This document shows, in pieces, positions 11,184 to 19,244 of a DNA stretch of 64,000 bases. The stretch is from sequence record PV764603.1; one strand, 5' to 3'. The notes under the pieces were generated by a model. That model was not told where the DNA came from and searched no databases. It saw only the letters and a program-made list of their open reading frames with translations. Position 1 is the stretch's first letter. Each line of letters begins with the position of its first letter. The position numbers were made by a program, and so were the translations under genes.

Positions 11184-11729
11184 ATGGCTGAGTTTGACAT
11201 TGCCTATAGGCAGCAGAACATCGAGTCGGATTTGATTGATGATCCTACTGATCCTGGGGCTGTGACAAACTATGGTTGGAACCTTGGCTCCCTCCGCTTG
11301 GTGGGAGTCGAGGCCGACTACGAATTCGTCAAGAGTATGACGGCGGCAACTGCCAAGGAATTATACCGTCAGTATTTCTGGCATCCACTTTGGACCGAAC
11401 TCAAATGTCAGCAGGCGGCAAACAAGCTGTTTACCCTCGCTGTGACAACGTGCGCACCCAACAATTTCAACTTGGCCACTCGCTGTTTGCAGAGGGCCTT
11501 GTGGGCATCGGGCGCTTACGTGCATGAGGATGGAAAGCTTACAGAGGATGTAATAAGCGCAGCTAACGCCGTTGAGTGTTCGGCCCTAAGCTCTGCCATG
11601 CGTAGTGAAATGGCTTCCTACTACAGGACGCTTAACGCGGAGTATGAACTGAGGGTCAAGTACAAGCTGCCTGTAGTGGTCCCCGTGAATCGTTACATTC
11701 GCGTGTGGCTTCACAACTCCTATCGCTGA
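11184..11729 (+). CDS. Divergent GH108 (TtsA-like) muramidase with PG_binding_3-like C-terminus
   Basis: ESDLIDDPTDPGAVTNYGW vs canonical EGGY.NDP.DPGG.TNYGI; LQRAL...EDGKL...I.AAN. Confidence 0.75.
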   Translation: MAEFDIAYRQQNIESDLIDDPTDPGAVTNYGWNLGSLRLVGVEADYEFVKSMTAATAKELYRQYFWHPLWTELKCQQAANKLFTLAVTTCAPNNFNLATRCLQRALWASGAYVHEDGKLTEDVISAANAVECSALSSAMRSEMASYYRTLNAEYELRVKYKLPVVVPVNRYIRVWLHNSYR

Positions 11730-11739
11730 AGAGGATGGC

Positions 11740-12465
11740 ATGACCATGAGCACGGAAACCGTTCTGATCGGTCTTGGCTGTCTACCTGATAACGCTCAAG
11801 CCCTTGAGGGGGCGTGCATTCGGTACGGCATCGAGACTACGTGGCACAAGTCCATTTTCATCGGACAGATCGCTGTAGAAACAGGTGGCTTCCGTGCCAC
11901 CCGCGAAAGCATGAATTACAGCGTTGAAGGTCTTATCAATGGTTTTGGCCGTCACCGTATCAGTGTGGCGGACGCTCAGAAATACGGGCGTATTGATAAG
12001 GTCGTGAACGGCAAGAAAACTGTTATCCGAGCAGCTAACCAAGTAGCCATCGCCAACATCCTGTACGGCGGTGAGTGGGGACGCAAGAATTTGGGTAATA
12101 CCGAGTTGAACGACGGATGGAATTTCAGGGGCGGCGGTGACAAGCAATTGACTGGCCGCGCTAATTGGACCAACTACAGCATGGACACCTATGGTGACTT
12201 GCGTGTGCTGGAGAATCCTACTCTGATCGAACTCTATCCCGACAAGAGCTACACTGCTGGTTGGTTCTGGCAACGCAACAAGCTGGGTGACATTGCTTCG
12301 CAATATGTGCTCCCTGATGATCCCAAATCTCCGGAGTACGATTCCATCCTGCGTTCTACTGTTACGGTAGTTACCAAGAAGGTCAACGGCGGTGACAAGG
12401 GTTTGGAGGATCGCATCATGTGGACGAAAAAGGCCCTGCAAGGCTTCAATCAACTCGTACTGTGA
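11740..12465 (+). CDS. GH19 endolysin (chitinase-like lysozyme)
   Basis: FIGQIAVETGGF....ESMNYS, NLGNTELNDGWNFRGGGDKQLTGRANW, AGWFW, VTKKVNGGDKGLEDR. Confidence 0.92.
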   Translation: MTMSTETVLIGLGCLPDNAQALEGACIRYGIETTWHKSIFIGQIAVETGGFRATRESMNYSVEGLINGFGRHRISVADAQKYGRIDKVVNGKKTVIRAANQVAIANILYGGEWGRKNLGNTELNDGWNFRGGGDKQLTGRANWTNYSMDTYGDLRVLENPTLIELYPDKSYTAGWFWQRNKLGDIASQYVLPDDPKSPEYDSILRSTVTVVTKKVNGGDKGLEDRIMWTKKALQGFNQLVL

Positions 12466-12471
12466 CTAACG

Positions 12472-12500
12472 TGCTGGGAACATTAGTTCCCAGCATTCTT
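12472..12500 (+). terminator. Probable intrinsic terminator
   Basis: TGCTGGGAA-CATTAG-TTCCCAGCA followed by TTCTT, after the endolysin. Confidence 0.6.
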
Positions 12501-12517
12501 CGTATAGGCCCCTGACT

Positions 12518-12883
12518 ATGAGAATTTTAGCCAATAGCACCAAGGTACGCGAAGGGGATTTCTCCAAGCTTCGTATCCCAAAAGCAAAGCAAGTCAAGGT
12601 GCACACGCATGACGCATGGCAGGGCCGAAAGAATCATCACCTGTCCTACGATTTTACTGCACCTAGCACTAGCATGCATCATCAAGCAGTCGGGAAGGCC
12701 ATCCATGAGCATCTTGCGTCTCATGGCCTGTCTCCACACAAACGCTCCAGTTCGGGCAACACGGTTACCATTGAGTACAGGCACCCATCGGGTCACCGCG
12801 CCGTTGTCAAGATGAAGCGTACAAAGCTCGCAGGCGATCCCAACCATCACGTGGAATTCGCCGTAGAGAAGACCGGTAACTAA
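12518..12883 (+). CDS. Basic His-rich hypothetical protein (possible internal head protein)
   Basis: 121 aa rich in H/K/R; composition resembles modules of ORF 23201. Confidence 0.6.
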   Translation: MRILANSTKVREGDFSKLRIPKAKQVKVHTHDAWQGRKNHHLSYDFTAPSTSMHHQAVGKAIHEHLASHGLSPHKRSSSGNTVTIEYRHPSGHRAVVKMKRTKLAGDPNHHVEFAVEKTGN

Positions 12884-12903
12884 CACTTCAATGAGGTAAC
12901 GTC

Positions 12904-13245
12904 ATGCCCTTGTGGTTGACTGCATGGTTTGCGAAAATGTGGGCCAAGTGCTCGCAGTATGTCATTGCCGCTGGCTCCATATTGGCGGCAATTGCTGGTA
13001 TCTTCCTGTACGGTCGCTTCAAGGGTAAGTCCGCCGCCGATGCAAAGCATGCGGAGCAGGATGCGAAACGAATTGAGGCTGAAACCAAGATCGTTGAGAA
13101 GATCGACCAAGCTCACGAATCTACCCGTGAGCAGGTCGAGGAAAAAATCGAGAAAATCCCTGCTCCAACTACGGATCCTAACGAGACAGTTAGGGTGGGG
13201 GATGCACCTAAAGATTCGGCCGCAGGCAAATTGAGGGGCTGGTAA
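12904..13245 (+). CDS. Inner-membrane spanin (Rz-like)
   Basis: N-terminal TM (YVIAAGSILAAIAGIFLYG) followed by a charged coiled coil; next to a lipoprotein. Confidence 0.8.
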   Translation: MPLWLTAWFAKMWAKCSQYVIAAGSILAAIAGIFLYGRFKGKSAADAKHAEQDAKRIEAETKIVEKIDQAHESTREQVEEKIEKIPAPTTDPNETVRVGDAPKDSAAGKLRGW

Positions 13246-13472
13246 TGAAAACTCTCCTGATTATCGCCATCGCCTTACTTGCAGGCTGCGCAACTACTCC
13301 ACAAGTGGTGGCTCAAACCGACATTTGCGCTGGCTGGAAGGCCATCAAGGTCAACGAAAACGACGAATTCACGGATGGAACTGCCAAGCAGATTCTAGCG
13401 CACAATTGTCAAGGCGCAGCCTTGAAGTGCTGGGCCTATCCGAGGAATGATCCCCAAATTTGTGAACGCTAA
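13245..13472 (+). CDS. Outer-membrane spanin lipoprotein (Rz1-like)
   Basis: MKTLLIIAIALLAGC lipobox; additional Cys residues; TAATG overlap with the i-spanin. Confidence 0.82.
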   Translation: MKTLLIIAIALLAGCATTPQVVAQTDICAGWKAIKVNENDEFTDGTAKQILAHNCQGAALKCWAYPRNDPQICER

Positions 13473-13481
13473 GAGGTAACA

Positions 13482-15866
13482 ATGCCGCTGCCCACTTCCA
13501 TCCAACCCATCATTGAGAATACTCCGGACATTCTCAAAGCATGTGTTGAAGTCTATCAGTCCATGTCTCTGCTACAGGACCGGGGCTTCATGTTCTTGAA
13601 CGAGCAGATTGAATTGCTCACGTCTACGGGTCAGGTGGCACACGTCACCACTGCGTATGGTACTCAGGTTGAGTTGCCCACGTATCATACTCTGGCAGCC
13701 ACCTCGAACGCCTCTACGGAATTGGTGCAGCAGTTTCAGCGCCAAATCTACGACGTGTTCACTAGCAACAACCCGACGGTAATCATTAGTGACGGTCTTG
13801 GTAACGACACTCAGGTGATCGGCTATCAGACCATGAACGACAAGGTTAACGCTACGTCGGACGTGGCTTCTATCGCCAACACCAACGCGCTCAACGCGCT
13901 GGGTAAGGCCACCGAAGCGCTGAACCGTGTTACCAACTCCGAGCTCAACGCCAACGTGGCTTTGGCGAACGGCACACCACCCACCTATCAGACGCGTTCG
14001 GTTCTCGATACTGTTACGACGATGCAACGCAATAGTATCGCCTACGTGATCGCTGATCCGGTTCCCACCAACAACACCATCTACCAGTACAACGGTACTG
14101 CATGGACTCCTCAGTATGATCGGCTGCTGACCGCCCTAGGTAGTCCGCGTGGCTATCTGGCCCCACTCACGGGCGCTATCTACCGTACCTATCAGAGCAA
14201 GCTAGAATCACTGGTTACTCCTGAAGACGTGGGGGCCAAGGGTGACGGCACTACTGATGACGGTCCCGCCTTCATCGCCGTCGCTGCGAACGGGCGCCTG
14301 ATTGTGCTGTCCCCCAACAAGACCTACCGTATCACCTCCAACGCCACTGTAGGCAGCATCATGCCTAATGGCTCCAAGATTTCCATCGGTCCGGGCGCTA
14401 CCCTGACTTTTGATGGCCTGATCGTGGACGATGCTACGGTTGTGTTTACGGGTGAGGGCAACGCCGTCAGCAGCACTAGCGTCTACAGCGTTGGCTGGTT
14501 CGCAGGTGATAGCTTTAACGCCAAGTGGCTCGCCATGAAGCGTGGTTTCACCCAGCAGGTAGTCAAGTACGTCACGCTGCCGATGCCGCACCGCACCGAT
14601 CCTGCGGCAACTACCGCAGCTTCGGACGGTCAGGCACGTTGGAAGCTTACGGACTCTGTGGTCTTCAACAATACGGAATCTAACCTGATCGTCAATGCGC
14701 TGGGCGAATTCCTTGTGGACCAGTCCGCCTCGCTGTCGGCAGGTGCTTTCATCCTTGGCGAGCTGACTGCCCCCTCCAGCATCAACTTCCCGAACGGCTT
14801 GCGCGTCCTGTGTAACGGTAGTGCAACTTACGGTCTGCGTGTTCGCGGCGGTAGCAGCATCAGTTTTGAGGAACTACTGGTTCTGGATAGTGCCACCAAC
14901 TCCGGTATCCTGTGGGACAACTACAACGGCCCGAGTCACCGAATCAGCTTCGACCGCGTGCGTATCGACGGCTTTGGTGTGGCAGGCGTAACCATCCAAC
15001 CGCAAGGTGGCCCGAGCTACCCGAACCAGTCGCCTCCGATCACTTCGTGTTCGATCAATTCGCTGCAAACGCGAGGCGGTCGTAGCGGCTGCACGAACTT
15101 CGTCAAGATCGCGGGTAACGTGGATGGCCTGACCATCACCAACGTCCTTGAAGATCGTCCGTCGGGTAGCCTGCTGTTCGACTGGAGCGATTCCATGTTC
15201 TCGCTGACTAACACTCAGTACGGCACGATTGGTCGCTCCGGTTTGGAGATTGGTCACATTCAGGCGACCAGCACCCAGCTGCCCATCATCCGTGCGTTCG
15301 ACAGCACTTCCGCTGCTGACCCTGCGAATGGCAAGATCACGTTCTCGGTAGAGCACATCTATCAGGCGTATCAGCAGAACATCGTTCCGGTCATCATGGA
15401 ATACTCGAAGAACTGCACCATCGGACGTATCAACGCAGGACGCCCCACCTCTAGTCAGGAAGTGCTTGTCCGTATCTTCCGCGACTGCGAGGGTATTTCT
15501 CTGACCGGTACACACTACACCGCTGTTCGTAGTCAGGCCCTGCGTACTCAGTTTGACGGACGCTTCGGCATGGTGGACGTGGTGCAGCAGAACTCTGCGA
15601 TCTTCACGGATCTAAACACTGCGGCACTGACGTTCAAGTTTGACCTAATCTGCCTCACCTCCGCGTCTACTTACGCTTCGGGTTGGGCAGGCGCCAACGC
15701 TCTCGATATTCCCACGTCGCTGACCAAGAATATCAACGTTGCCCAGGGTCCGCTGGAAGGAACGACCGGCCCTGAAAGCACCATCAGCATCAGTGCTGCG
15801 GAAAACAAGTTCTTTGTGGAAAACCGAACCGGACAGAATCAGCTCGTTGCGGTTCTCATGTCCTAA
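13482..15866 (+). CDS. Tailspike/depolymerase with pectate-lyase-3-like beta-helix
   Basis: VTPEDVGAKGDGTTDDGPAF...IVLSPNKTYRIT motif followed by beta-helix-like repeats. Confidence 0.82.
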   Translation: MPLPTSIQPIIENTPDILKACVEVYQSMSLLQDRGFMFLNEQIELLTSTGQVAHVTTAYGTQVELPTYHTLAATSNASTELVQQFQRQIYDVFTSNNPTVIISDGLGNDTQVIGYQTMNDKVNATSDVASIANTNALNALGKATEALNRVTNSELNANVALANGTPPTYQTRSVLDTVTTMQRNSIAYVIADPVPTNNTIYQYNGTAWTPQYDRLLTALGSPRGYLAPLTGAIYRTYQSKLESLVTPEDVGAKGDGTTDDGPAFIAVAANGRLIVLSPNKTYRITSNATVGSIMPNGSKISIGPGATLTFDGLIVDDATVVFTGEGNAVSSTSVYSVGWFAGDSFNAKWLAMKRGFTQQVVKYVTLPMPHRTDPAATTAASDGQARWKLTDSVVFNNTESNLIVNALGEFLVDQSASLSAGAFILGELTAPSSINFPNGLRVLCNGSATYGLRVRGGSSISFEELLVLDSATNSGILWDNYNGPSHRISFDRVRIDGFGVAGVTIQPQGGPSYPNQSPPITSCSINSLQTRGGRSGCTNFVKIAGNVDGLTITNVLEDRPSGSLLFDWSDSMFSLTNTQYGTIGRSGLEIGHIQATSTQLPIIRAFDSTSAADPANGKITFSVEHIYQAYQQNIVPVIMEYSKNCTIGRINAGRPTSSQEVLVRIFRDCEGISLTGTHYTAVRSQALRTQFDGRFGMVDVVQQNSAIFTDLNTAALTFKFDLICLTSASTYASGWAGANALDIPTSLTKNINVAQGPLEGTTGPESTISISAAENKFFVENRTGQNQLVAVLMS

Positions 15867-15872
15867 CGTGGT

Positions 15873-15890
15873 GGTCACATGGACGTGACC
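15873..15890 (+). promoter_or_regulatory. GGTCAC-ATGGAC-GTGACC hairpin (CsrA/RsmA-type site)
   Basis: Perfect 6-bp stem; ACATGGACGT matches (A/U)CANGGANG(U/A). Confidence 0.62.
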
Positions 15891-15907
15891 CTTTCTTGAG
15901 GTGCACA

Positions 15908-16051
15908 ATGAAGCTATTGGTATTGATCGGAGTGCTAGCTCTGGCAGGCTGCAACTCGATGCCTACGCCGTCCAAGCCGCTGAACACTGGGGACGAAACG
16001 CAACCTCCTCCGGGTTGTGTGGAACTACGTAAGCAAGGAGGCAAGTGCTAA
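15908..16051 (+). CDS. 47-aa lipoprotein (not in the supplied ORF track)
   Basis: GAGG RBS; MKLLVLIGVLALAGCNSMPTPSKPLNTGDETQPPPGCVELRKQGGKC; lipobox LAGC; stop overlaps the next ATG (TAATG). Confidence 0.75.
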   Translation: MKLLVLIGVLALAGCNSMPTPSKPLNTGDETQPPPGCVELRKQGGKC

Positions 16052-16473
16052 TGGCCCTGTCGGTACAAGATTACACGGCACTGCGACGCATCCACTCCAA
16101 GGCAATGTCTGCCTTCAAGTATGTGTCGGACAAAACCAAATGGGGACTGGTAGAGTATTGGGAACCCGAGGACGTACTGTTCCCCGTAGGTGCTAGGTTT
16201 ACGGGAGATTGCGAAGAATTCGCTAGAGTGTGCATGCAGGAAAGCATCAAGGCCGGTTACAAAGCACGGCTCGTTGCATGCCTTACTGAAGGTGGCGAAG
16301 GCCACTGCATCTGTGAGGTGGCGGATGAGGAAGAAACGGGATCGTTCTTCTTAGACAACCGCAAGACCAACATCGTTACCAAACTGGGATTGACTGGCTA
16401 CAAGTTCTACAGCGTGTCGCCTTGGAATCCCCAATTTAGCGAGACTCGGCCGTGGAGGCTGGTCAAGGAGTAA
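16051..16473 (+). CDS. Transglutaminase-like cysteine protease (BTLCP/peptidase C93, LapG-like)
   Basis: KYVSD..KWG..EYW, GDCEEFA (Cys), EGHCICEV (His), FLDN (Asp) match the BTLCP Cys-His-Asp triad motifs. Confidence 0.85.
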   Translation: MALSVQDYTALRRIHSKAMSAFKYVSDKTKWGLVEYWEPEDVLFPVGARFTGDCEEFARVCMQESIKAGYKARLVACLTEGGEGHCICEVADEEETGSFFLDNRKTNIVTKLGLTGYKFYSVSPWNPQFSETRPWRLVKE

Positions 16474-16476
16474 GGT

Positions 16477-16695
16477 ATGTCGCTGGTTCCAACCAACACA
16501 CCACGGCAAAAGATCGCTGCCAAATACAATCCTAGAATCACTAGGATTCGGAAGCAGAAAGCGCAACTGCGCAAGTCCTTGAAGAACGCCAATACGGCAC
16601 AGCGCAAGGTCATCGGTAACAAGATTCTGGCCATGAGTAATCAGATCGCTTTGCTTACGGTACAGCGCAACCGCGAGTTGCAGCGCCTCCGATAA
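16477..16695 (+). CDS. Small highly basic helical protein (72 aa)
   Basis: K/R-rich, almost no acidic residues; follows TAAGGT. Confidence 0.6.
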   Translation: MSLVPTNTPRQKIAAKYNPRITRIRKQKAQLRKSLKNANTAQRKVIGNKILAMSNQIALLTVQRNRELQRLR

Positions 16696-16705
16696 GCCAA
16701 AAGAA

Positions 16706-16733
16706 AAGGGCCACCCCTTTCGGAGCGGCCCTT
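16706..16733. terminator. Hairpin, candidate minus-strand or bidirectional terminator
   Basis: AAGGGCC...GGCCCTT stem preceded by an A-tract (a U-tract on the minus strand); between convergent genes. Confidence 0.55.
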
Positions 16734-16776: not shown

Positions 16777-16806
16777 AAGGGGAGCACGATGCTCCCCTTC
16801 TTTTTT
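16777..16806 (+). terminator. Intrinsic terminator
   Basis: AAGGGGAGC-ACGAT-GCTCCCCTT followed by CTTTTTT. Confidence 0.8.
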
Positions 16807-17509: not shown

Positions 17510-18009
17510 GAGAAATCTCCGATGGGTTTAAGGATTTGATACTCCGCCTTTGTCAGGTTCAATACCCTGCGCAGGCGGTGATTGTGGGCATTGAGGAAAG
17601 CCAAGTCGCCTTCCTCTAACTTTTTGATTCCCGACAGGAATGCCTTCCAGTTCTTTCTAGACAAGGCAGCTATGAACTTGCTGACGGACCATTTCGATTG
17701 GCTAAACCAAGGCGAAGCTAGTTTGTCTCTGCACAGCTGCTCAATGTCATCCGGTAGCACTGTCGTGGCATACGGCACGCGCTCTAGGAATGTTGCATAC
17801 TCATCGAGAATCAGGATGCGGGCTATTCTTAACTTACCTCTCTCCCGAGAGGTACGCAGGGCAGCTAACGTGATGCCCTTGGTGGTTGCAATGAGCTTCG
17901 GGGTAGTAACACCTTTGATGCACATTCCCTGAGCCCAATACATGCAGGAGAAGTTCCCACATGATCCTGTATAAGAAGTACCGATAAGTGGACAGCGAAG
18001 CTTTGTCAC
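17506..18009 (-). CDS. Hypothetical protein with N-terminal Cys cluster (possible Zn-binding)
   Basis: CPLIGTSYTGSCGNFSCMYWAQGMC; 4-nt overlaps at both ends. Confidence 0.6.
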   Translation of the reverse strand: MTKLRCPLIGTSYTGSCGNFSCMYWAQGMCIKGVTTPKLIATTKGITLAALRTSRERGKLRIARILILDEYATFLERVPYATTVLPDDIEQLCRDKLASPWFSQSKWSVSKFIAALSRKNWKAFLSGIKKLEEGDLAFLNAHNHRLRRVLNLTKAEYQILKPIGDFS

Positions 18010-19244
18010 TTTCTCCCTTTCCGACTAATAGCTTTGAGTAGCTTGTTCAAAGTTGCCTTGGTGAATTGGTAGTGGGGCAGGCTGTAATATAGCTCGGACG
18101 CATACACACCAATAAGCATCGCATCAATAACGTGAGGCTCTTGATCCGTTTGCTTGTATACGTCCTCAAGGTTGAACTTGGCGTTGAATGCGTTTTTCCA
18201 CTGCGACGCAGGGAATACCACAGTCGGTTCTTTCGTTCGTACCATGAATGCCCCGATCATTGCGTTCACTGCTTCCATCGTGGTGCCGTTCAAGCCCATG
18301 CGATACATGAACCTTTCCGCCGCCCACGCAGAAGCACCGAACTCCTGACCTAGTGACTCAATCTCATTCAAGAAGCTCAATACTTGCATTCGATGTTCGC
18401 TTCCGACCATCGACTTAACTGTGCTGTTGATCTTCCCTGATCCACGTACTACTGGAAGTTTTCCATACTCCACGTTGAGGCATGCCCATGCACAGTTGGA
18501 CGTACCTGGGTCGAGACTGAGAATGGTCATCATTGGCCGCTCAACACGGCGAATGATTCCCGCAACCCAATCGAACCCTGATCTGAACCACCCTTCGGGA
18601 AGCTCATAGGCATTGCGTCCCTTGACCACAAAGACGCGCAGCTTTTTCTTCTTTCCAGCTTTAGCCAAACTGACGAACTTGTCCCATTCCGAGTACAGCT
18701 TGTTTACGCTCACTGCACAGATGGGGGCGCCGTTGGCCATAGCAGACGGAACATAGTGGCGGACGATCTTGTCAGTGGTAAAGGCGATGGAATCCCCATC
18801 CCTAGCCGCCGTGATCTTGCCACGTATACAATTAGTCGGAAGGCGTCCTGAGCGATATTTGGCAGGTAGGGCCTTGCATTTGGGGCAGCTGTCGAACTTG
18901 GTAGCCGCAGCCCAATTATGTGCCGCCACGAACTGCTTGTTGCACACCTTGCACAGGTAACGCCGTCCTTTAGCCTCAATCCGAATGGGTAGCACACGGT
19001 CGAATTTCTTGATGACCCGAGCTATCCATTCGGCTTGCTGCTGGCCTCCTGCATACATGCAAGCCTGACACTTGCCTGCACTCGACAACATAACCCGAGG
19101 GCTACGATTGAACGTCTTGCCACACCCCACGCACTTGTGGGCTATGGCTATGTCCCTGCCTCGATACTTACCCAGCATCAAGTTGGAACCAAATCGCTTA
19201 GTCAGCGCCGCAGTGTAGGCCGCTGCCTTAGCCCCTTTTGCCAC
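18006..19244 (-). CDS. RuvC-like Holliday junction resolvase fused to N-terminal Zn-ribbon repeats
   Basis: C-half ILSLDPGTSN, AAERF, FPASQWK, HVIDAMLIG (RuvC acidic motifs); N-half CVGC..CQAC and CKVC..CPKC. Confidence 0.75.
   Translation of the reverse strand: MAKGAKAAAYTAALTKRFGSNLMLGKYRGRDIAIAHKCVGCGKTFNRSPRVMLSSAGKCQACMYAGGQQQAEWIARVIKKFDRVLPIRIEAKGRRYLCKVCNKQFVAAHNWAAATKFDSCPKCKALPAKYRSGRLPTNCIRGKITAARDGDSIAFTTDKIVRHYVPSAMANGAPICAVSVNKLYSEWDKFVSLAKAGKKKKLRVFVVKGRNAYELPEGWFRSGFDWVAGIIRRVERPMMTILSLDPGTSNCAWACLNVEYGKLPVVRGSGKINSTVKSMVGSEHRMQVLSFLNEIESLGQEFGASAWAAERFMYRMGLNGTTMEAVNAMIGAFMVRTKEPTVVFPASQWKNAFNAKFNLEDVYKQTDQEPHVIDAMLIGVYASELYYSLPHYQFTKATLNKLLKAISRKGRK

Follow-up and report, generated by a model that had tools for sequence, protein, structure and literature searches.

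A stretch of 64,000 nt from sequence record PV764603.1, here called the window, contains an overlapping gene pair (positions 15908–16473 of the window) that sequence comparisons identify as a lipoprotein-type BTLCP cysteine peptidase in divided form. The first gene encodes a micro-lipoprotein and the second a catalytic domain without a signal peptide; very probably, the two are made as separate, co-evolving polypeptides that either descend from a single-chain lipoprotein BTLCP or are interchangeable with one. This divided arrangement, previously unreported, recurs in dozens of unrelated phages and, judging from the loci compared, most phage BTLCP copies in this branch of the family are one half of such a two-gene unit. 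The features of the module are as follows:

15898–15903, plus strand: Shine-Dalgarno-like GAGGTG, 4 nt 5′ of the lipoprotein start codon (read from the sequence)
15908–16051, plus strand: micro-lipoprotein gene, 47-aa precursor (open reading frame and translation)
15950–15952, plus strand: codon of the lipobox cysteine, Cys15
16035–16041, plus strand: strong Shine-Dalgarno AAGGAGG, within the 3′ end of the lipoprotein gene and 9 nt before the catalytic ATG
16051–16473, plus strand: BTLCP (Peptidase_C93) catalytic gene, 140 aa, without signal peptide (Pfam PF06035)
16210–16212, 16303–16305, and 16354–16356, plus strand: codons of the conserved triad Cys54, His85, and Asp102, respectively

The micro-lipoprotein and the catalytic domain

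The open reading frame (ORF) and its hydropathy confirmed the first gene product as a lipoprotein with an LAGC lipobox, as proposed in the initial annotation of this DNA: a hydrophobic N-terminus, with a signal peptide at residues 1–14, precedes the lipobox L-A-G-C (Cys15), leaving a mature part of 33 residues (Cys15 to Cys47) whose tail, TQPPPGCVELRKQGGKC, has Cys as its terminal residue. The gene had also been described as unannotated, which does not hold for GenBank PV764603.1, where it is a coding sequence (CDS) for a hypothetical protein, as is the catalytic gene, but does hold for several metagenome contigs in which gene callers missed it; the ORF is uncalled, for instance, in loci L005, L008, and L118. 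No family match was found for the lipoprotein in Pfam, NCBIfam, or PADLOC, and a component of anti-phage defense was discarded for want of a PADLOC match. Its matches in PHROG were all weak, to spanin (E = 4.4e-4) and Cor lipoprotein families, and covered the signal/lipobox end alone. Conversely, a profile of 33 other split lipoproteins, built without the window lipoprotein and without its nearest relative, matched it with E = 2.5e-13 in a search of 1260 sequences, among which none of the decoys reached E < 0.8. Likewise, the ratio of nonsynonymous to synonymous substitution rates (dN/dS) against locus L003, the closest diverged relative, was 0.13 for the lipoprotein frame vs. 2.7 for the two other frames. 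Chance as the origin of this ORF is excluded by these comparisons, which also indicate that the micro-lipoproteins form a new family, with a median mature length of 33 residues (range 26–65) in a cleaned set of 63 distinct split modules, mostly from viral contigs.

It is formally possible, with nothing further in its favor, that the split reflects a sequencing or assembly error, such as the indel contemplated in the initial annotation, or a recently broken pseudogene. The chances of this are negligible. A 4.2-kb stretch of the window shows 100% identity to the Xanthomonas phage PhiXhv-16, a jumbo myovirus (229 kb) that infects X. hortorum pv. vitians and was sequenced, according to its source paper, at a read depth of at least 3,676x (PMC13340338), and 99.6% identity to phages PhiXhv-12, PhiXhv-15, Ep026, and Ep032; the arrangement is identical in these five independently sequenced phages. 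Additionally, the split is kept at catalytic-domain identities of 62% (L003), 53% (L005), 50% (L008), and 45–46% (Xanthomonas phages LucasX and RTH11; genes LUCX_127/126), and it recurs in lineages down to ~30% catalytic identity, with the lipoprotein frame under the strong purifying selection described above.

The product of the catalytic gene belongs to Peptidase_C93 by its model score, its triad and its fold. It matched Pfam PF06035 with E = 5.2e-9 and 36.5 bits (cut-off 27). Among 28 relatives, His85 and Asp102 are invariant and Cys54 is nearly invariant, and in an alignment of 115 sequences His85 is invariant and conservation reaches at least 90% for Cys54 and Asp102. An AlphaFold2 model of the ORF (mean predicted local distance difference test, pLDDT, 88.4; predicted template-modeling score, pTM, 0.81), in which the first helix belongs to the folded domain and the loop at residues 31–50 has low confidence, predicts a transglutaminase-like (papain-like) fold. 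The best solved structures retrieved with Foldseek were the LapG entries 4U65_E and 4FGP/4FGQ/4FGO (E from 1e-5 to 3e-4; root mean square deviation 2.7–3.6 Å; TM 0.64–0.69, normalized to the query); the six matches with E ≤ 0.001 were all LapG chains, and other transglutaminase-like or papain-like enzymes appeared at weaker E. The model suggests that the ORF encodes a complete, catalytically competent domain, with triad and fold intact. Hydropathy revealed no hydrophobic segment over its 140 aa, in agreement with the absence of a signal peptide noted initially, and the ORF lacks in consequence the export signal that is characteristic of the family.

The match to PF06035 spans profile positions 34–144 of 162, and the first ~33 positions are absent. 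In canonical BTLCPs, a Pro/Gly/two-Cys segment occupies profile positions ~4–22, which places this N-terminal segment, correctly anticipated in the initial annotation as part of the same chain, within the Pfam domain. The division of the window module therefore falls inside the Pfam-defined domain, and its catalytic ORF is devoid of the stretch (profile ~4–33, including the two-Cys segment) that completes the full-length domain in a single chain.

Both halves match single-chain homologs in which a lipobox, a lipoprotein-like segment and the catalytic domain follow in unbroken succession (P0042, P0135, P0110, P0086, and P0149). The profile of 33 lipoproteins matched residues 36–64 of P0042 (E = 1.6e-10), as well as P0135 (4.6e-10), P0110 (3.9e-9), P0086 (3.3e-6), and P0149 (1.7e-5), and the window catalytic ORF aligned with P0042 from residue 68, directly past the lipoprotein-like region. 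These single-chain forms are real and not artifacts: P0135 is encoded in three phage-like contigs, each from an independent sample, and P0042 is surrounded by chemotaxis genes (MCP, response regulator, STAS, and CheA-like), a locus that we read as a bacterial chromosome. The comparison of fused and split homologs recommended in the initial annotation showed that both forms exist, at times with considerable identity: single-chain P0086 is 64% identical to the split L100, and single-chain P0159 is 56% identical to the split L085. From this nesting of single-chain forms among split ones it follows that the two states have interconverted. The proposal that the enzyme is genetically split was therefore well founded, since both halves match single-chain homologs and the division lies within the Pfam domain.

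Junction and linkage of the two genes

The ATG of the catalytic gene and the stop codon of the lipoprotein gene have one base in common (position 16051), an overlap that is read directly from the sequence and had been described correctly. It had also been suggested that a −1 recoding event could fuse both products; in this case, a programmed ribosomal frameshift at the junction would generate one lipoprotein peptidase chain, exported whole. This is in keeping with the overlap of the window genes, with the position of the catalytic frame at −1 of the lipoprotein frame, and with the existence of single-chain homologs. However, the relative frame is not conserved, with an offset of 2 in 43 modules and of 1 in the other 20, and the junctions range from short spacers to overlaps of 47 nt, the commonest being the 1-nt overlap (23/63). 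The final 30 nt of the lipoprotein frame lack a classical slippery heptamer in all 63 modules, whereas a Shine-Dalgarno-like site precedes the catalytic start in 51 of them and the start codon at the junction is ATG or GTG in 59. Likewise, 10 of 12 close loci have a GGAGG-type site at the same distance as in the window, where the strong Shine-Dalgarno and the ATG are placed exactly for an independent start. We consider a frameshift very improbable, because mixed frame offsets, variable junctions, common Shine-Dalgarno-like sites, and the lack of slippery heptamers all argue for two polypeptides; the junction has, in its sequence, the signature of translational coupling and not of a conserved frameshift.

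The initial annotation would have been weakened if the lipoprotein were unlinked to BTLCPs in other genomes, but the linkage holds in both directions. Broader scans of viral contigs and genomes using a 9-sequence alignment showed that, of the 99 distinct catalytic sequences in the fetched loci, at least 67 have a partner ORF. In the reverse direction, a profile search with seven lipoproteins matched 35 small proteins, none of them with a Pfam domain or a functional name; the lipoprotein homologs that were looked up, including the most distant, were in 4/4 cases directly 5′ of an ORF of 119–145 aa with a Peptidase_C93 or Transglut_core domain. When viral contigs were scanned with an alignment of the lipoproteins, only four loci were confirmed, all of them known before and all adjoining a BTLCP gene. 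The terminal residue of the lipoprotein is Cys in 58 of the 63 modules, and the pairwise identities of the two halves are correlated (Mantel r = 0.49, with 0/999 permutations as high), which indicates that they are inherited together. Together, these comparisons indicate that both genes are under selection and that their linkage is strict.

The lipoprotein gene is often missed or mis-called by gene callers and had no functional name in the sources searched. Additionally, what looks like an N-terminal extension in some catalytic ORFs is in fact another frame of the lipoprotein gene, and this annotation is corrected here. This is seen in L118:2919-3567, where the caller took the other frame of the upstream lipoprotein gene. 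An export through the Tat pathway was discarded for the same reason: the Arg-Arg extensions of P0007, P0009, and P0010 are a gene-calling artifact, and the P0009 locus shows the other frame of the split lipoprotein.

Source phage and gene neighborhood

The features surrounding the module are as follows:

11184–13472, plus strand: lysis genes (PHROG matches, GenBank annotation, and hydropathy), comprising the following entries up to 13472
11184–11729 and 11740–12465, plus strand: endolysin-like glycoside hydrolases, both without signal, ~4 kb upstream of the module
12518–12883, plus strand: ORF of 121 aa, located after the endolysin-like genes and before the spanins
12904–13245 and 13245–13472, plus strand: Rz-like and Rz1-like spanins, which like the hydrolases lie within 3–4 kb upstream of the module
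13482–15866, plus strand: tailspike-like gene, 794 aa, upstream neighbor of the module (PHROG 14558 tail spike protein, E = 1.1e-11)
15873–15890, plus strand: leader hairpin (stem of 6 bp, loop of 6 nt with a GGA) in the gap that separates the tailspike-like gene from the lipoprotein gene (terminator-like scan)
16477–16695, plus strand: basic 72-aa ORF, downstream neighbor that shares the transcription unit of the module without belonging to it in general
16703–16733, minus strand only in the scan: terminator-like hairpin with a 12-bp stem, facing convergent genes
16777–16799, plus strand: separate terminator-like hairpin (terminator-like scan)

The tailspike-like gene is also found upstream of the module in L003. 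The very basic 72-aa ORF, which precedes the terminator-like hairpins, had no significant family match in Pfam, PHROG, or NCBIfam; L003 has a 70-aa counterpart, but none is found in other clades, and none follows the module in LucasX and RTH11. With its Rz1-like gene and its signal-less hydrolases, this phage already possesses an o-spanin-like lipoprotein of its own and envelope-acting enzymes without export signals. We discarded an o-spanin identity for the micro-lipoprotein, given this Rz-like/Rz1-like pair (12904–13472) and the limitation of the PHROG match to the signal/lipobox end. The 121-aa ORF showed neither a transmembrane segment by hydropathy nor a PHROG match, and the holin of the phage is thus not at the expected place. 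Two further observations concern the source phages and their genes: Ep032 (OQ603359.1), 99.6% identical to Xanthomonas phages over the 4.2-kb stretch, is recorded with an Erwinia host, and a 412-aa ORF on the minus strand of the window (18006–19244) combines an HNH-endonuclease-like N-terminal part with a C-terminal part similar to RuvC-like Holliday-junction resolvases (PHROG 18317, E = 1.2e-26).

The initial annotation also included a CsrA-type hairpin in the leader, of which only a part stands. The hairpin exists, presumably resembling a putative CsrA/RsmA site, and L003 retains it with two compensatory pairs and an unchanged loop, but it is absent from other clades, including the LucasX-like phages. 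Comparable hairpins occur by chance in ~3.5% of the 93-nt tiles of the window, and the 56-nt leader region folds no better than shuffled sequences (z = −0.18). The hairpin is probably real in the clade of PhiXhv-16 and L003, and is no feature of the module as such. The LucasX-like clade of jumbo phages has instead a different conserved box in the leader, without a GGA-loop hairpin: a TATAGAT-type box ~25–35 nt 5′ of the lipoprotein start in L008, L011, L012, and L014–L016, which may be a phage promoter element.

Module neighbors are diverse in the ~55 loci examined on each side, and include tail fibers and other tail proteins, thymidylate kinase, and virion proteins; in general, both here and in the window, they are phage genes for tail, virion, and nucleotide metabolism. 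Three reverse transcriptases (PHROG 1423, best E = 1.7e-139) were found among the upstream neighbors in L003–L105. In the Neptuniibacter-type contigs L128 (3001–3569) and L131 (1792–2360), the module is within a tail gene cluster, in the order 924-aa ORF, 226-aa ORF, module, DUF1833, and GpJ-like gene. In LucasX-like phages it is a separate two-gene unit on the strand opposite to the structural genes, with a terminator annotated in LucasX. The behavior of the module is that of a mobile moron, which agrees with the horizontal transfer described in the passages on viral BTLCPs of a survey of single-virus genomes from river water (PMC11283719).

A possible lysis-gated mechanism and comparison with known systems

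The divided module poses the question of how a signal-less enzyme meets an exported, lipid-anchored partner across the inner membrane. Several phage members of the family have a signal peptide or a lipobox on the domain itself (L020, L022, L024–L027, L035, and L108). Because of these members with their own signals, the periplasmic location of the bacterial enzymes LapG and HvyA, and the lipoprotein nature of the single-chain relatives, the family is considered to act outside the cytoplasm and, by analogy, we infer that the window module acts in the envelope. The signal-less hydrolases and spanins of this phage imply that membrane permeabilization already delivers enzymes to this compartment. 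Together with these two endolysin-like hydrolases, a precedent for signal-less envelope enzymes is the design of P0096, a 291-aa protein with a signal-less BTLCP-like N-terminal domain followed by a Peptidase_M15_3 domain, in an endolysin-like architecture suggestive of a function of phage BTLCP domains in the envelope or cell wall. As to other architectures, the 461-aa homolog P0033 carries an intein-like insert (LAGLIDADG_3 match) exactly at the catalytic Cys, and the flanks of the insert together make up a normal domain.

We propose that the first gene would yield a Sec-exported, lipid-modified peptide of ~33 residues, equivalent to the anchor plus the Pro/Gly/two-Cys segment of single-chain enzymes, and that the second, with a ribosome-binding site and a start codon of its own, would be translated in coupling with the stop of the first. 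The catalytic half would accumulate in the cytoplasm, as the signal-less endolysin-like enzymes of the phage, and would first gain the envelope when the inner membrane is permeabilized at lysis; there it would associate with the anchored lipopeptide, possibly via the tail cysteines, and cleave or modify an envelope protein. The division would then serve as a timer, holding an enzyme destined for the periplasm inactive until infection ends. By analogy with the known enzymes, candidate substrates are an adhesin (as for LapG) or a component of capsule or exopolysaccharide export (as for HvyA), and the frequent adjacency to tail-fiber genes would fit a role in receptor or surface remodeling. A lysis-gated meeting of the two parts in the envelope, which rests on these analogies, is a tentative proposal to which we give somewhat less than an even chance; its stricter version, a split enzyme whose parts are made on opposite sides of the inner membrane, with early export of the lipid-anchored peptide, and are joined at lysis and perhaps relinked via the C-terminal Cys of the lipopeptide, is rather unlikely. 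Taken as a whole, two polypeptides that meet at lysis are the best explanation at hand, and one that, as a compromise estimate, is slightly on the probable side.

Several observations weigh against this mechanism. Docking of the anchor is not confidently predicted: in the AlphaFold2 model of P0042 the anchor segment has pLDDT values of 47–73, modeled at low confidence because its N-terminal alignment is shallow, as a word-based search with P0042 gave one further relative only. Additionally, the catalytic ORF folds confidently alone, and the lipopeptide is unnecessary for the core fold; in LucasX-like phages the module stands alone on the opposite strand; the hydropathy of nearby ORFs revealed no holin in the vicinity of the module; and there is no consistent adjacency to lysis genes, with just one spanin and one endolysin among the ~55 downstream neighbors. 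A cytoplasmic role for the catalytic half is also possible. Membership in a lysis cassette was discarded on the same count, one spanin and one endolysin among the ~55 loci on each side.

These points raise the alternative that the two products are independent, the catalytic domain having a cytoplasmic target protein, either of the host or of the phage, and the lipoprotein an envelope role of its own (e.g., receptor masking, as by small lipoproteins encoded beside tail-fiber genes), with an adjacency that reflects common ancestry only. It would be consistent with a catalytic ORF that is signal-less and a complete domain on its own, with the weak PHROG matches of the lipoprotein to Cor superinfection-exclusion and spanin families (signal/lipobox end only), and with the several tail-fiber or tail proteins among the upstream neighbors. 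Nevertheless, linkage is strict in both directions over a very wide divergence (4/4 in the reverse direction), the tail cysteines are conserved, with a final Cys in 58/63 modules, close relatives have both parts in one exported chain, and the normal site of the domain is outside the cytoplasm, as shown by the members that bear a signal themselves. Independence of the two products is, on this evidence, improbable.

The catalytic half might also be a virion-associated or ejected enzyme acting in the envelope of the next host, with the lipoprotein serving the producing cell as an assembly aid or a protector. Three homologs of ~730 aa (P0124, P0133, and P0151) that contain an internal Peptidase_C93 domain (E = 1.7e-35 for P0124), and that may be large virion or tail proteins, point in this direction, as do the location of the window module directly 3′ of the tailspike-like gene, that of the L128 and L131 modules in a tail gene cluster just before the GpJ-like gene, and the several tail proteins among the neighbors. 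Conversely, the LucasX-like module is separate from the structural genes, on the opposite strand and, in LucasX, with an annotated terminator, and a virion enzyme leaves the strict coupling to a lipid-anchor segment unexplained. We consider this alternative still more doubtful than independent products.

If the lysis-gated model were true, gene division would be a simple means for phages to time an envelope enzyme, and the modules would constitute a widespread, previously unrecognized class of lysis-timed phage envelope effectors. Such modules would likewise point to a stage in the infection, namely release from polymers at the surface, adhesins, or receptors, of importance for phages under development against Xanthomonas diseases. 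The setting for these possibilities is the river-water survey in which, according to its passages on this family, BTLCP is the most frequent auxiliary metabolic gene of the environmental viruses and is exchanged horizontally between viral clusters (PMC11283719). Nothing is said in those passages about a lipoprotein partner, the lack of a signal, or gene division; in the literature searched we found no description of a divided BTLCP or of its lipoprotein partner, and the papers on PhiXhv-16 and LucasX, which contain no proteomics, do not mention the two genes of the module.

Two activities are documented in the family, LapG-type release of adhesins and HvyA-type block of capsule export. LapG from Pseudomonas fluorescens and Legionella pneumophila shares with the window enzyme the Peptidase_C93 family and the Cys-His-Asp triad, and is its best structural match. 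LapG itself is soluble and periplasmic, carries its own signal, and is under the control of LapD; the PDB entry 4FGO is titled "periplasmic protein." The description of the window enzyme as LapG-like stands for family and fold (TM 0.64–0.69), but not beyond: the NCBIfam LapG equivalog NF045674 (cut-off 320 bits) did not match the window ORF at E up to 0.1 and gave 20 bits with the single-chain P0042, and the window catalytic sequence matched LapG structures weakly (E = 0.41 with a single sequence and 0.0047 with a profile). No LapD, LapA, or type I secretion system genes appear in the gene tables of the neighborhoods (the window and ~55 loci on each side), in which no search was aimed at them. 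As far as these sequence comparisons go, the window peptidase is not a LapG equivalog.

HvyA of Caulobacter crescentus is a periplasmic BTLCP with an effect at the cell surface: it prevents capsulation, requires its triad, and is linked to phage susceptibility (PMC4241560). Encoded by the host, it is a single chain of 272 residues that is exported by Sec and has no lipid anchor, whereas the window module is phage-encoded and divided, with a lipid-anchored part.

Among phage systems, the two-component spanins Rz/Rz1 include a small, proline-rich, Cys-bearing outer-membrane lipoprotein whose gene overlaps that of its partner, and signal-less endolysins wait in the cytoplasm until the holin acts. 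The module resembles Rz/Rz1 in its small Cys-bearing lipoprotein and its overlapping partner gene; however, its partner is a soluble peptidase and not an inner-membrane spanin subunit, and it is rarely found beside lysis genes.

Finally, the single-chain lipoprotein BTLCPs contain the PF06035 domain, a lipobox, a proline-rich two-Cys segment, and the catalytic domain in the same order as the window module. In these proteins the whole enzyme is one polypeptide that is exported and anchored as made, whereas in the window module the chain breaks off immediately past the second cysteine and the catalytic part is signal-less.

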